Positions 32,783 through 41,300 of a DNA stretch of 52,760 nucleotides are shown one piece after another. Position numbers and translations under genes: made by a program. The number at the start of each line of letters is the position of its first letter. The stretch's first letter is position 1. Under the pieces are notes generated by a model. That model was not told the DNA's origin, searched no databases, and was given only the letters and a program-made list of their open reading frames with translations. The stretch is from Klebsormidium nitens (Eukaryota > Plantae > Klebsormidiophyceae): the NCBI GenBank assembly GCA_000708835.1, contig DF237550.1, positions 1 to 52,760 of the forward strand, given 5' to 3'.

Positions 32783-35700
32783 TTACACTGACGTCACCCA
32801 TCCTTTGAACGGCTCGACGTTGCCGCGAGCGAAGAGCTCCACCAGCCCCCACTCCTCCTGCACGTGGCGCGCCCTCGCAGGCCCCATCATTCCGTACAGC
32901 CCCCTCACCGGGGCCAGTATTGCCTGGTACGCCGCTGGGATCAGGTGCTCGTACTTGGCCGGTACGAACCGTTCCAGGAACCAGTCGCTGTGCGCTGACG
33001 TCACCACACCGTCCACCACCAGCAGCCCGTTCCGAGTGTACGGGTTGAACAGACCGGTGCTGGGCGACATCACCGCTGCTGCCACGTGGCACAGAGCGAC
33101 GCCACCGGGGGCAGCGGCCCACACGCGCGCGCCCGCGCGCGCGCGCATGGCGGGCACCAGGCGGTGCTCCCCCCACTTGCCACGGCCTTCCGGGGCGACC
33201 GGAAGGAAGTGTCCGGGAGTGAGTTTGAGGGTGAGGTTGTCGCCGGGAACCCCACCCGGTGCGCCTGGGCATTGGATGTCCAAGTGTACGTAGTCTGCTG
33301 ACGTGGCGCTGTCCTGATGGCCGAACAGGTAGACTTCCTCGAAGCGCGCCGCGCCCGTCAGAGGATCCACGCTCCGAATCTTGTCGCCGAGTTGTAATGC
33401 GTCCATCCTGTCGCGAAGGAAACGAGTGAAAAATTTCTATTCAAGACGGCAATGAACTTCCCTAGTCGAATCATCGCGATTACGCCAGCTCGTCCCACGA
33501 TTTCTACAGTTTCTTCTTCAGCGGCCGTCCAAAAGTGTCTGTTTCCTCTGATCGCGTTGATCCAGCAGATAATTGTCACCCTGCTCAGCAAGCTTTTCAG
33601 GCTTCATCTTTTCCAAGACTTGGGCAGTACTTTGAGCCAGATTCTGTCATCAAGGATACCAGACCGGGTTTCCGCAATGCTTCTCATGCGTGCGTGCGCT
33701 CCTTGCATTTTGACTTCTCCGTCTGCAGAATCTCAACAATGTGTGTCAAAGACAATAAGTGGCAAAGCGGACGATATTTGGGGCAACCGCAAATACATCT
33801 CAACTTTTGGATGAGACGATCGAAACTTTCAAATGTCACCATAGACAATCCACAACGGTCTAGACTCCCGGGACAGAAGTTTCGACATTCACCCGCGAAC
33901 CCGTACTCTCGAACCGTTACATTCGGTTGCAACAATCTGGCGGCCGGCCGAGTGGATGACACTCTGCAGCCAGTCTTTGAAACGTCGAGTGCTCAAAACA
34001 TGGTTGCTTTGAACACAGAATCCATACTGCGGCCGAACAACGATAGCATCGAAGGACGACGGCTCCCCTACCTCTTGCGCGCACCTCCCTGCATTTCCAC
34101 GGTCGCGGCCGCGGGGAAACAGCCCGCATTGTTCTTCTCGACCGCGGCTTGGCAGTTGGCCCCCGCCATGATGCCCGCGCCGACGCCGACGAGCACCGCA
34201 CCGGCGCAGGCCCCGCCGAAGGTCACGACGCAAGCGGCGCCGCCGGCTGAAAGCAAGGTCTGGTGGAGGGTGTTTTGAGAGGTTTTTCGGTGATCGGACT
34301 GGCTTCGTTGGGGACGGCGGGTGTCTGAAGAGTCATGACTCCTGTTCATGATTGACATGCCCAAGTTGTGGAATCAGTCGTGCCAACCACTGAGCTGGAC
34401 GTTTCGACGCATACAGCACCCCCTGATTTTCGTAATACCGGTGCGCCCACAATCCTCTTGATTGGACTTCTTCAAGCTAAACCCCTCACCGACGGTCGCG
34501 CCCGCGAGCGCGACGGTTGACCCGACGCAGTTCGCGGTCGCCTGCCCGTCGACTTGGAGGAGCCGCCTGCCGGGCGGAGTGGCCAGGGATCCGAAGGGCG
34601 GCAGCTTCAGGCTGGCGTTCAGCGTCCCTATCGCGGTGCGGGCGTCCGCCACCGCGGAGGGGGGGTACTCCACGTACATGTAGCACCCGGGGTCATTCGC
34701 CTGGGCGGCACCCGCCGGTTTCACGCGAACGACCGGGTTGCCGAGCTTCCTGCAACGTAGGCTGGCACCAAATTGAAACCAGCAGATATTTGAAGGATGT
34801 GCTTTGTGTATGAGCATTGGCGAACGGAGCCCACTTAGAAAGGAGCGACTTATGTCACGCCGCCGTGGCTTCGAAGCGCGCAGGACTCCTGTGCGGAATG
34901 GTCTTGAGTGGGGCTCAGCGGGAGATGATGGGATCTGATGGGCTTTCATCTGACATTTCTGTGATCATCGCACTCATGCACCATTGGAAGAGGAAGATAG
35001 ACGCGGTCGAGGGAAAGGGAATCGGATGACACCCGTGGGGGAACACAATGAAAGTTCCCCAACCATCACGCCGGCAGAACTTGAATTTGTTGAACAAATT
35101 ATCTGACAGGACTTGAAAGGGGATGAGCTCACAAGATTCAAAAGTGCGCACGCAACGCGTACGAAGACACGAGTGCTGGGAGCTTTCTCTTCCGCTTCCA
35201 GCTCTGCAGTCGCAATAGTGATGTAACAGTTGGTCGACAATCTTACTGATACTGGACGGCGGTGTTCGGGGTGAGGCCTGGGATGAGAGGGGTGAGCGTG
35301 TCGGCGGCTGGGATCGGGATCGAGAACTGCGACACTGGAGCGTCTTGTACTTCGAGAACTGCCCAGGACGAGGACATGTCGCTGCCCTGAGGGGCTTGCC
35401 AGTCGACCGCCTTAGTCTGCAAACAGGAGCAGAAGTTCCTGTCAAGTCTACAGTGGCAAATTAAGACCAATGCATTGCTCCTCGGCTGGCGGCATAGATG
35501 TCTACGGCTTCGGGTCATTTTCGTAACCGCAGCTTTCGAAGTATCTACAGGGCTTTTGTAAGTCTGTGATGATAGAATGAGCGCAGAACATTTTTAAAAG
35601 CGATGCCCCTGGGTCGGCGGACTCAAAAGCAATCAACACCAGACTCAAATGACAGGGTGTTTTTGATGAGGCCCATCATATACCTTGATTACGCCGGTGC

Positions 35701-36739
35701 AGGTCGGGTAGTCGAAGCAGAGGTCCGGGGTAGAGGCGTTGTACTCGGCAAGGATCCCCTGGCCATACGTGGGCAGTTCATTTTCGAGCCGATTGAACGC
35801 TTGGAGAGCGTCCGGACACGTCAGCTCGGCGAGGACCGCCTGTAGGAACGAAGCGGTGAGCTCATCGGATGAGAATGATGGCAACATGGTGCTTTTGCTG
35901 GAAGGACATGTCACGCTTCTTACGAATCATGGGAGGAGAGCCCAGCTGAGTGAGGGTTTGCAGCTTGAAACATTGCAGAATATGCATGCGTTTTCCAGAG
36001 AAATGCATCCGTTGATTATGTCTAGACTGTCGTATATCCTTAGCGGAGCGGTCCTGTCTTGGAAGGCTGCTGGATAGAATCAACCTTGGCCCAAGAAGGT
36101 AGTAATCAACCTGAAAGAGCCAGATGGATTGACGATCGTTCGAAGCTTGTGAAAGCGTTTCTGGCACAGCGGGGAGGAGATGCAAGTCTGGCTGAATGCG
36201 CTGCATTCGGACCCACCTGTACGTCAAATAAGTCCCCGCCTTGGCTCGCCCTCTTCTTGCGCTCCAGCAGGTCCAGGCTGTTTGATGTGGCACCCCGCTT
36301 GATGGGTACCACGTTGTGGCTCTGGCAGGCCGCACCCGCCGCAGCCTGCTGCAGCCTCCGAGAGGCAGCTGTACGGAAACGGACACGCCTCATGAAAGAG
36401 GGATACTTGAGAGAGACTCACAGGACTCAAGGATCCCTCAAGCTTCGGGCCAATACTCATTGCAAAGAGGAGCTCATCGACCCCCCCTTTACGTGGCGGC
36501 AGGATTGGCCGAATAGCTCCATGTTAAACTTCTCAAAACTTTCTCAAAATCTTCCCTACAATGAGTAGTATGCTGGATGATTTCAGACATGCACGTCGTA
36601 AAGATGGCATCAGCCTGAGAAACAAAATTTTACCAGATGCCGCTGCCTCCTTGCCAGCTCCCAGCAGCGCCACCAAATACAGTAACACCAGAAGGCATGG
36701 CCGTCGAGATCTCGTCATGCCTTCCGTATTGTCCAGCAT
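32783..36739 (-). CDS. Secreted Hedgehog-type (Hog) Hint autoprocessing precursor, ~540 aa
   Basis: Seven phase-consistent exons: 36718(or 36739)-36634, 36368-36217, 35839-35693, 35416-35247, 34749-34490, 34246-34072, 33407-32783. Signal peptide PCLLVLLYLVALLGAG; Hint start G|CFPAAATV (Cys codon 34119-34121); MDALQLGDKIRSV; block B LKLTPGHFL; block F GLFNPYTRNGLLVVDGVVTSAH; then a helical tail resembling the Hog adduct-recognition region. Confidence 0.9.
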
Positions 36740-38320: not shown

Positions 38321-41300
38321 ATGGCCGATATTGAACAGAAAATAGAGACCACTACAGGTAGGCTCCAGCGCTCTTCGCACCGTGCACTTGTCTTATTTGT
38401 CAGTGAATTGATGATCTGCCAAACGTCGCGGATGCAATGAATCGACTTGTGCTTTCCTGAACGGGAATTTCAAGCTGCAGTCGGTCACCAAGAACTTTAG
38501 GTTCTCTTGCCAAAAGACTGCTCTTACTAATCGAACAAGGAGTGACAGTTCGGTCGGTCTGCAAGCTTGAAAGGCCGGGAGGAAAAAGTCTGGCTTGCAA
38601 AGAACTTCTGCACCTTCTCCATCAGCACCGAAGATGGCGACTGAAGAAGCCATTCGAGAAGTGTAAGTACATGCCTTTGAGATACGAAGCCAAGCAGCGC
38701 ATGTGCTCGTTGGATGCGAAGGGATTGGGGCCAGAGTCAGTCCTGCATCAGGGAATGAATCACTCAAATGAAACTTCTTAATCTATTTTGCTATGCAAAT
38801 TCACTACAATCTTCCATCGTTCAGGTCCGAAGGTGATGAGCAGGCTGCTGAGGAGGAGGAAGAAGAAGAAACCTACGAGCCAGTCGACAGACGTGAGCTT
38901 CAAAAGTTCATCGTGATGATGCGAATGCCGTGCAGAGGGCACCCTTGTCTGCATCCGTGAAGTCTGCAGCATTTGGTCAGATATCATGACGGACATAAGG
39001 CAGCTTTTGAGTGGTGGATTTGCAAATATTGTTTGTTTGTGAAAGGAATCAAGATCAGAATCCGAAGTTTTCATCTGGAAAGATCTTCAGGATTGTTTTT
39101 CTTTTGTGTCCTGCAGTACAGGCTCATGGCATCAATGCTGGTAAGCTGTCAGTTCTTCCTTTCCCAACGCCTCAAGCGGCAATATTCACGACCCTCCAGT
39201 CCTGAAAATCGTGGTATACAGAGCCTTGAATATCAAGCTCGTCCACTTGATGATTCGTTTGCAAGTACACTTTTGGAGTCTGAAGCTGGTTTTTGTAGCC
39301 TTGTTCTTGCATGACGATCTCTTACCGTTTCAAGCATACCACGATCTTACAGGCGACATAAAGAAACTGGTCGAATCGGGCATAGTTAGCTGCAACGGAG
39401 TCCGCATGCAGACGAAAAAGGTGAAATGGTTTCGTTGCCGCAAAGGCATCTTGACGTTGAAGATCGATTTGCTGACTTCAATGAATGTCTCAACTCAAGT
39501 TGCACATCAGTTGCTCTCAGAAGACTATAAAGTTGCGTGGAAGGCCGAGCTGCTTTTGATCAAATTGACTACTTGAGGTTTCAGAAAAACGGAAATTTTC
39601 TGCCTGCAGACGCTCTGCAATATCAAGGGGCTCTCTGAAGCGAAGGTCGACAAAATACTGGAGGCTGTGGATAAAATCATTGTGAGCAAGATTCGACTCT
39701 GCACTTGTGCTCCGAAAAATGTGAAGGAAGAAATTGATAAGCTAACAACCAGGATTTGAGCGGAGCAGGTTACCACAGTTTCAGCTCTGGAATGCAGTCT
39801 CAAAAGGTCAGGCAATGTGAACTTTACGTAAAGGTGCGACTTGATAAGTCTTGCAAGTTCGGCAAAAAAACATTGAGATATTCAAGGTAGAGAGACAAGC
39901 TTGGTCAAATCTTCACTGCAGAATGGTGGGTTCGTTACCGGCAGCGAAGCACTAAACAAGGTAAGACCATTCACTCGAAGCTTCTTCCGAATGATTGGTG
40001 ACTGAGTCAGGATTCGAGGAGCTAGTGAGGGCTTTCTAAATCCATCACTTTTGGTGTCTAAAACTTTAAGAATTTGAAGATCTAGTAAGCCCTTCCTGGT
40101 ACCTCAGAGCGGCGTTCACCATATTGATGACTACACTTATCCGACGCAGAGAAAGCAAGTCATCAGAATTACAACCGGTAGTGCTACTCTAGATGAACTC
40201 CTGGGGGGCGGCATGGAAACAGCAAGCATTACAGAAGCTTTTGGAGAGTTCAGGTAAGCCGTTCGCCTCAGCTTTCTTGATTGCAGAGGACCTAACAATA
40301 ACAAAACTACGAACGCTTGTTCTAACTTTAACAAGTCCATCTCGTCCATCATGTTCATCTTGAAAGGGTGAGCTAGTCTGACCAAAAAGCCCACGACATT
40401 GAACTTCATCCGAACGCGCATCAGAAACTGCAATTTTTGCATAGAACTCGGCACTCTCTGTCTTTGTTAAAACAAGCTTAAAAGATTTTGCTTCACGTGT
40501 CATTTCCAGGACCGGGAAAACACAGATCGCGCATACACTGTGCGTCACCACTCAATTGCCTCGATCTATGAACGGAGGTAAGGACCAATCTTCTTAAGGA
40601 CAGGATGTTCGTGTTGAATCTTCATCGTGCCAGCTTGCAGATGCTCGTTTCGAGTCAGGTCTCCTAAAACAACTACAACTACAACAACTACGCTCGAGAA
40701 CCGAATGAATTGTAACATGAGTTCTCCTTTGAAACATGTCTCACGCTTCCAAACTGTTCACTTTTGCAGGACACGGCAAGGTGGCGTACATGTGAGAAGT
40801 CTTGCAAGGTCCTCAGTTGCCTGTGCCGTTCTTCTTTGAATGGAAGTCAGTTTCTTCGCTTGGAGAAAGCCAAGTTGAGATAGATTGTAATGTTCTGGAA
40901 CAATGCACCGAAGAGTTTAAGGAACTCAAAAGAGCCACTACGGCTTGCTTCATGTATCGGACACCAACCAACGTTTGGGATATCGCTTGCAGAGATACTG
41001 AAGGTACCTTCCGACCTGAAAGGATCATTCCCATTGCCGAAAGGTTTGGCATGGATCCAAACAGCGTCCTTGAGAATGTAAGTACAAGTCCCGTTCAGAG
41101 TCCGCTTGTTAAAGTCAGTCTCGTAATCGCTCGACTGGACGTTACGATTACAACCAAAGCGCAAGTCTTTGAGCTTTGCTATCGTTTCCATCGGCTGAAG
41201 TTTCTGAAGCTCAATATGATGAGTTCCTCTGTCCTCTTCAGATCGTTTACGCGCGCGCGTACACACACGAGCACCAGTTCGGTCTTCTCCTTGGACTTGC

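Follow-up and report, generated by a model that had tools for sequence, protein, structure and literature searches.

Which part of a Hint precursor of the plant lineage outlasts the cleavage of that precursor, and in what form? This question is raised by a gene of the alga Klebsormidium nitens, which we studied in a stretch of 52,760 nucleotides of contig DF237550.1 (hereafter the window; coordinates are positions in this window, and the gene lies on its minus strand). The initial annotation, drawn from the sequence alone, had proposed that the precursor releases a 64-residue, four-cysteine, bacteriocin-like hairpin between an RRLL site and the Hint autocleavage site. In our model the gene runs from 36718 to 32783 in seven exons and encodes 540 amino acids. 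The product consists of a signal peptide, an N-domain of ~220 residues, RRLL (residues 249-252), the 64-residue segment and, from Cys317 onward, the Hint domain with its adduct-recognition region (ARR). Comparison with relatives delimits a conserved module that begins at RRLL and ends at the Hint cysteine. We give a probability of roughly 40% to the reading in which a Hint cut and a subtilase cut leave a lipid-tagged, disulfide-held membrane peptide while the N-domain is shed.

The cysteine segment and its two flanking sites

The Hint exon matched open reading frame fragments at 83% and 61% identity. In three relatives, namely the syntenic locus L001, which is the closest, L002 and L004, RRLLQVD, the intron position, the EKNNA tail and all four cysteines at 17-7-17 spacing are retained. 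L003, a paralogue further removed, shares the 17-7-17 frame; it reads RRLQQ at the motif, and its tail comprises 12 residues. JGI sample 3300060285 is the source of both L002 and L004, near-identical whole-gene copies on separate contigs that may be paralogues, haplotypes or strains. In the chlorophyte locus L005, which also served as query in a word-indexed search, segment and Hint are encoded by one exon; the search returned a Scenedesmus protein, P0017, and its kin P0016 and P0018, which carry a six-cysteine version (10-5-7-7-9) directly before S/CFP (the slash marks the predicted scissile bond). The full-length fern protein P0023 (Adiantum) consists of a signal peptide, GGRRKLLDAG-C-19-C-9-C-16-C-7-CFP, Hint, ARR and a C-terminal transmembrane helix. 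BLASTP aligned our spliced model to it at 35% identity over 283 residues (E 1e-34), spanning RR(K)LL and the cysteine segment. By eye, we also compared the window protein with two sequences from a published supplement (PMC2362128): the Physcomitrella pPp Hog protein (...ARRRLLARNLLARKLLQGDN-C-18-C-10-C-16-C-AEANG/CFPGDATV) and a Selaginella lepidophylla expressed sequence tag (...AARRILLGD-C-REEAGKGAIGGAITGVLGTGG-C...). These comparisons indicate that the window gene is most likely the Klebsormidium orthologue of the "plant Hog" family of mosses, lycophytes and ferns. For this family, Bürglin (2008) mentioned only a "conserved upstream region not found in other organisms", with no description of the protease motif or the cysteine segment (PMC2362128).

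The spliced read of the window is ...PPG-RRLL / QVDGQATANC...NNAG / CFPAAATV (translations of 34491-34748 and 34074-34244), with the RRLL codons starting at 34568 and the glycine codon before the Hint cysteine ending at 34122. The segment cysteines are residues 262, 280, 288 and 306, i.e. positions 10, 28, 36 and 54 of the peptide, and the core between the first and the fourth contains 24% Gly and 27% Ala. The C-17-C-7-C-17-C frame is identical in the window, L001, L002, L003 and L004, in spite of differences at up to about 36% of the remaining positions, and on the sequences compared this conservation exceeds chance. G12, V15, A18, A26, A27, G33, A35, G47, A50 and G51 are also invariant in these five loci, while the remaining positions interchange among G, A, S, T, V, I, L and N. 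The window, L001, L002 and L004 all have the ladder G43-x3-G47-x3-G51, of which the paralogue L003 retains G47 and G51.

The ratio of nonsynonymous to synonymous substitution rates (dN/dS) is <1 in all parts of the gene, and the frame is open through the seven exons. For the segment against L002 it is 0.16-0.26, and the segment is therefore under purifying selection. Against L001, the closest relative (window 34122-34556 vs L001:5161-5717), dN is 0.28 and dN/dS reaches 0.77, compared with 0.07-0.32 in the flanking domains. About 16 small residues were replaced by V, I, M or G in the window lineage, leaving the cysteines and the G43/G47/G51 ladder untouched. The segment thus appears to have changed at an accelerated rate on the window branch, with relaxed and positive selection indistinguishable on 70 codons.

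Upstream, the candidate protease site lies 3-9 residues before the first segment cysteine. It reads RRLL in the window, L001, L002 and L004, RRKLL in the fern P0023, RRLL and RKLL in the moss, and RRIL in Selaginella lepidophylla. The consensus of alga, moss and lycophyte is R-[RK]-[LI]-L-[QL]-[GV]-D, the fern form being shorter (RRKLLD). In plant type-I pectin methylesterases (PMEs), RRLL/RKLL is accepted as the motif at which subtilases process the precursor, and it often occurs in pairs (PMC13477033; table in PMC4008260). This identity of the core, together with its conservation across streptophytes, is the strongest support for a second cut. Judged from the motif, a subtilase may well cleave after RRLL, and we regard the chances as evenly balanced.

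Downstream, exon 7 matched the Pfam Hint family (PF01079) with 52.4 bits (cut-off 29.7; E 7e-14), and the unspliced L005 scored 101.6 bits. CFP at the start of Hint is kept in all relatives. C317 (CFPAAATV) and T396-P-G-H399 correspond in the alignment to Cys1 and TPAH of the Drosophila Hint domain, and the position of the Drosophila general base, D303 (D46), is occupied by His363 in the window and by His in all relatives. The best match of L005 in the PDB is the D303H mutant of Hedgehog (6TYY, E 8.5e-8), followed by the wild type (1AT0, E 1.6e-6); the window Hint exon aligns to 6TYY likewise, but weakly. According to a review, D303H Hedgehog retains its structure and activity and has a wider substrate range (PMC9163320). 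The ~65 residues after Hint contain conserved SDWFL and YQAILAPVR blocks and are ARR-like. AlphaFold2 was run on the fern P0023 and Scenedesmus P0017 with a 25-row alignment, from which we had removed the rows of short exon-5 fragments that MAFFT twice misplaced onto the ARR. It modelled the Hint/ARR module confidently in both homologues (predicted local distance difference test, pLDDT, >90; helices >85). Hint self-cleavage at G316/C317 is well supported by these alignments and probably occurs.

Several elements of the initial annotation were thus confirmed: the peptide sequence with its Gly/Ala/Val richness and its cysteines at positions 10, 28, 36 and 54, the Hint precursor, whose catalytic residues are intact, and the assignment of RRLL to the plant subtilase-type motifs. 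The conservation of the cysteine spacing, on which the proposal had been made to depend, was found in L001-L004. The G/C junction holds for the window protein and is not a rule of the family, since Cys1 is preceded by Q in L001 and L003 and by S in the fern and chlorophyte forms.

Two further observations concern this region. A hydrophobic helix follows the ARR at the C-terminus of L003 (P0005), P0023, P0007, P0003 and the moss pPp Hog, whose precursors are thereby tail-anchored type-I proteins; the proteins of the window, L001 and L002 terminate without one. A (GC)n-like run at 33116-33155, within the Hint exon, encodes RARAGAR.

Gene model

We built the model by translation and fixed the exon boundaries against the relatives (Table 1). 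All six introns are of the GT..CAG type and all phases fit. Between the syntenic L001 and the window, exon DNA is 76-88% identical and the introns fall below detection. Coding conservation begins exactly at the exon 2 acceptor in the window, L001 and L002. An ATG at 36393 was considered as the start and ruled out, because L001 has no ATG there and conservation starts at the shared acceptor. The signal peptide was called by a hydrophobicity heuristic and by exon conservation: an 85-nucleotide homologue in L001 (2901-2985) encodes MRRCRRPLFLVLLYLMALLGAG, and L004 and L003 have signal-peptide exons of the same phase.

The intron that interrupts the segment had been placed exactly by the initial annotation. 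It contains an in-frame TGA and must therefore be spliced out. Joining the exons at the same position and phase restores the frame in L001, L002, L003 and L004, all of which keep this intron; it is absent in the chlorophyte L005. The proposal of a secretory-pathway precursor also agrees with our model, as the signal-peptide exon is conserved in relatives. The length of the intron is a multiple of 3, and its retention would truncate the protein before the second arm of the segment and Hint.

Table 1. Features of the Klebsormidium nitens Hog gene, with positions in the window
Feature	Position	Strand	Description
Exon 1	36634-36718	minus	85 nucleotides; ATG and signal peptide MTRSRRPCLLVLLYLVALLGAG; ends in phase 1; homologous exons in relatives
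Exon 2	36217-36368	minus	Start of N-domain, holds ASRRLQQ; acceptor CAG kept in window, L001 and L002
Exon 3	35684-35839	minus	N-domain; 92% amino acid identity and dN/dS 0.07 against L001
Exon 4	35247-35416	minus	N-domain; donor GTAAG
Exon 5	34490-34749	minus	End of N-domain (GCYMYVEYPP), sequon, RRLL, first arm of segment
N-glycosylation sequon NAS	34611-34619	minus	Relatives have NAS/NRS/NAT/NVT
RRLL (residues 249-252)	34557-34568	minus	Candidate subtilase/site-1 protease (S1P)-type site; conserved in relatives
Four-cysteine Gly/Ala/Val-rich segment (Q253-G316)	34122-34556, intron-interrupted	minus	64 amino acids; from translation and spliced read
Intron between exons 5 and 6	34247-34489	minus	243 nucleotides, GT..CAG; in-frame TGA at 34374-34376
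Exon 6	34072-34246	minus	Second arm of segment, EKNNAG tail, start of Hint module
Cys317 codon	34119-34121	minus	Predicted Hint nucleophile at G316/C317; L005 equivalent aligns with Cys1 of Drosophila Hedgehog Hint
Exon 7	32783-33407	minus	Hint module and ARR-like C-terminal helices (His363, T396-x-x-H399); stop codon 32783-32785

A Pfam search of the N-domain exons found no family at E<=1, and so no Hedge (HH_signal) domain. Searched against 1.84 billion representatives, the exon-5 profile returned only open reading frames of the L002/L004 type and weak bacterial immunoglobulin-like repeat matches over GCYMYVEYPP. A metagenome scan with the same profile gave 84 pattern matches, 0 of which were confirmed, and a word-indexed search with the exon-6 open reading frame gave no match. 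Just after the signal peptide, ASRRLQQ (36346-36360, minus strand) is of the RxLxQ type and has the counterparts RELQQ/RKLQQ in L002, L004 and L003; from its sequence and position it could be a pro-peptide processing site or merely part of the mature N-terminus. In the corresponding region, L002 tandemly duplicates the 5' part of exon 2 (TGAAR(K/E)LQQ...CQTHNVVPI; L002:738-809 and 857-1030). Upstream of the gene, a 1.3-kb block (38402-39722) is 71% conserved with L001:384-1713 and presumably represents a neighbouring gene.

Fate of the segment

In the reading that we prefer, Cys317 would attack the carbonyl of G316 in the endoplasmic reticulum and form a thioester, to be resolved by a nucleophile that the ARR would position and His363 would activate. 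This nucleophile would most likely be a sterol or another lipid, which would become ester-linked to the C-terminus of the segment. The cut after RRLL would follow at a later stage of the secretory pathway and would be made by an S1P/SBT-type subtilase; in S1P substrates, the cleavage site typically lies immediately outside a stretch embedded in the membrane. Together, the two cuts would leave a peptide of ~6 kDa, which two disulfides (C262-C306 and C280-C288) would hold in a folded-back form. The lipid-tagged peptide would sit in or on the membrane, and the N-domain would be shed as a soluble protein. We consider it more likely that the segment serves as a membrane tether, the N-domain being shed in a regulated manner, than that it is a toxin. 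Our ranking of the possible roles of the segment places a membrane remnant or tether first, followed by a part of an uncut cargo, a positioning device acting in cis and, last, a toxin or signal.

Several observations weigh against this reading. At the Hint site, the equivalent of Hedgehog C143 is Ala in the window protein, as has also been noted for moss and red algae (PMC2362128), and hydrolysis without formation of an adduct is possible. At the protease site, L003 has RRLQ, with Q, which is not a canonical S1P residue, at P1. The chlorophyte relatives have no RRLL at the corresponding position; alignment by eye places their RRLRK/RRAKK cluster on the helix that precedes the N-glycosylation sequon. 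For the segment itself, the homologues in which it is uninterrupted (L005, P0017 and P0023) stood in for the window sequence in folding and scans. In the two homologues folded with AlphaFold2, P0023 and P0017, the segment had a pLDDT of 28-39 and no secondary structure, and Fourier analysis of hydrophobicity and side-chain volume found no significant helix periodicity in either arm (p 0.07-0.5). The helical hairpin and the disulfide pairing that the initial annotation had put forward thus received no backing from the modelling; the symmetry of the cysteine positions (10+54 = 28+36) is compatible with a helical or a beta hairpin. Lastly, the gene model rests on comparative evidence because the RNA data speak neither for nor against it: one public run overlapped the gene and yielded a single unspliced contig of 261 nucleotides (34299-34559) with no joints, uninformative either way.

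The strongest alternative, which we consider possible and less probable than the two cuts, is that the segment forms the membrane-associating C-terminal end of the N-domain cargo. Hint would then make the only cut, RRLL...D would have a structural role, and the product would be a protein of ~290 amino acids with a C-terminal adduct. Hedgehog needs no second cut, and both the Q at P1 of L003 and the chlorophytes, which keep the cysteine segment and Hint in the absence of RRLL, fit this explanation. Against it, R-[RK]-[LI]-L occupies the same place in alga, moss, lycophyte and fern while its flanks vary, and the core of the motif is identical to the proven plant subtilase motif.

It is unlikely, in our view, that the segment acts only in cis, by dipping into the lumenal leaflet and holding the scissile bond near the lipid nucleophile before it becomes a spent pro-piece. 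This explanation would account for the place of the segment, which in the homologues compared always lies next to the Hint cysteine, at a distance of 5-12 residues and irrespective of their N-domain, and for its marginal hydrophobicity in all of them: the best 19-mer has +1.1 to +2.5 kcal/mol on the Hessa scale, compared with -1.8 for the C-terminal transmembrane helix of the fern protein. The His at the general-base position, which suggests a substrate other than cholesterol, also points in this direction. Animal and nematode Hog proteins, however, are processed without such a segment, the four invariant cysteines point to a lasting, folded product, and the burst of amino acid change in the window lineage would be unexpected for pure positioning.

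More doubtful still is a secreted pore-forming toxin or diffusible lipopeptide signal, cut twice and resembling class II bacteriocins. The composition of the segment and its G43/G47/G51 ladder are reminiscent of glycine zippers, amino acid change is accelerated on the window branch, and nematode Hog cargo peptides of only 15-34 residues provide a precedent (PMC2362128). In the ESM Atlas, the model of the fern protein can be superposed over residues 186-243 on hairpin models from several bacterial glycine-zipper clusters, with TM-scores of 0.65-0.75 by query; such values are weak and mean little over ~55 residues. No usable match for the segment came from the ESM Atlas feature search. The Pfam and NCBIfam searches with the segment of five homologues and window exon 6 found no meaningful family, bacteriocins included, at E<=10, and the glycine-zipper hidden Markov models PF13441, PF13488 and PF05433 did not match the segment at E<=10. 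The "bacteriocin-like" character of the initial annotation is therefore reduced to a likeness of composition. Furthermore, a hydrophobic peptide with a lipid tag would tend to remain on the membrane of its producer.

Least probable of all are an ordinary two-pass transmembrane anchor, which Kyte-Doolittle means over 19 residues of up to 1.7-2.07 would favour, and a mis-modelled or dead locus, to which the lack of spliced support in the RNA run could be attributed: the Hessa sum is positive in every homologue, so that the segment is too weakly hydrophobic for a classical transmembrane helix; four invariant cysteines in a lumenal protein argue for disulfides and hence against an anchor whose turn, with two of these cysteines, would face the cytosol; and the open frame, the dN/dS values and the syntenic orthologues speak against a dead locus.

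Known systems and meaning for the Hog family

Non-animal Hog proteins have been catalogued since 2008 and, to our knowledge, none of them has a known product or function. The family and the moss sequence have been public for the same time, and what the window gene reveals is an unrecognised conserved module in a known family. In the literature that we searched, we found neither the combination of protease motif and cysteine segment, nor its extension to streptophyte algae, ferns and, as a variant, chlorophytes, nor the prediction of two cuts.

The closest system is plant Hog as described from Physcomitrella (pPp) and Selaginella (pSl/pSm) (Bürglin 2008, PMC2362128). The window protein shares with it the signal peptide, a cysteine-containing N-domain with a GC-x-(I/M)-Y block, R-[RK]-[LI]-L-x-x-D, the Gly/Ala-rich four-cysteine segment, CFP-Hint with FGH and (S/T)xxH, and the ARR motifs SDWFL and YQ..L.P.R. 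It differs in lacking the transmembrane helix in which the moss and fern proteins end, and in its cysteine spacing (17-7-17, compared with 18-10-16 in the moss and 19-9-16 in the fern).

With animal Hedgehog (1AT0, 6TYY), the window protein has in common a secreted precursor, Hint with its Cys nucleophile, T-x-x-H and a putative general base, a C-terminal adduct-recognition region and, as predicted, a C-terminal adduct. It has no Hedge domain, His in place of Asp303 and Ala at the equivalent of C143, and its hydrophobic cysteine segment and second protease site have no counterpart in Hedgehog. Cleavage of Hedgehog leaves an upstream part with a modified C-terminus, HhN-cholesterol, made by HhC.

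The substrates of plant subtilases and S1P, such as the pro-regions of type-I PMEs, carry the same tetrapeptide in the lumenal part of a secretory precursor (PMC13477033, PMC4008260). The moss Hog protein has two such motifs in tandem, like many PMEs. Beyond the motif, PMEs and the window protein have no sequence or domain relation, and the Hog motif is known as a candidate site from its sequence.

Bacterial glycine-zipper proteins (Gly-zipper_YMGG, Gly-zipper_Omp, Rick_17kDa_Anti) resemble the segment by a Gly/Ala-rich stretch of ~45-60 residues with GxxxGxxxG. Many of them are lipid-anchored membrane proteins. They are without the four conserved cysteines, and their lipid is N-terminal, whereas the one predicted for the window segment would be C-terminal. 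Class II (Gly-rich) bacteriocins share small size, Gly/Ala richness and moderate hydrophobicity. Unlike these, the window peptide has no double-glycine leader, would follow another maturation route and is internal to a 540-residue precursor, encoded by a eukaryotic nuclear gene with introns.

The Hog proteins of the plant lineage thus share a delimited module, in which a subtilase motif is followed by a cysteine-framed Gly/Ala segment that ends at the Hint site. Klebsormidium, mosses, lycophytes and ferns all retain this module, and chlorophytes have a variant devoid of the motif. What was an "unknown upstream region" gives way to a prediction that can be tested, namely two cuts that yield a small product with a lipid tag, and Physcomitrium is genetically tractable. 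Moreover, the general base that occurs naturally in this clade, His, is the substitution that widens the substrate range of engineered Hedgehog, which bears on the lipid that plants attach. We consider it improbable, and mention it as a speculation, that streptophyte algae and non-seed plants make a lipopeptide in the form of a cysteine-stapled glycine zipper of ~60 residues, cut out by a subtilase and Hint and acting on membranes in signalling or defence. If true, this would be a class of lipidated peptide so far undescribed in the plant lineage.

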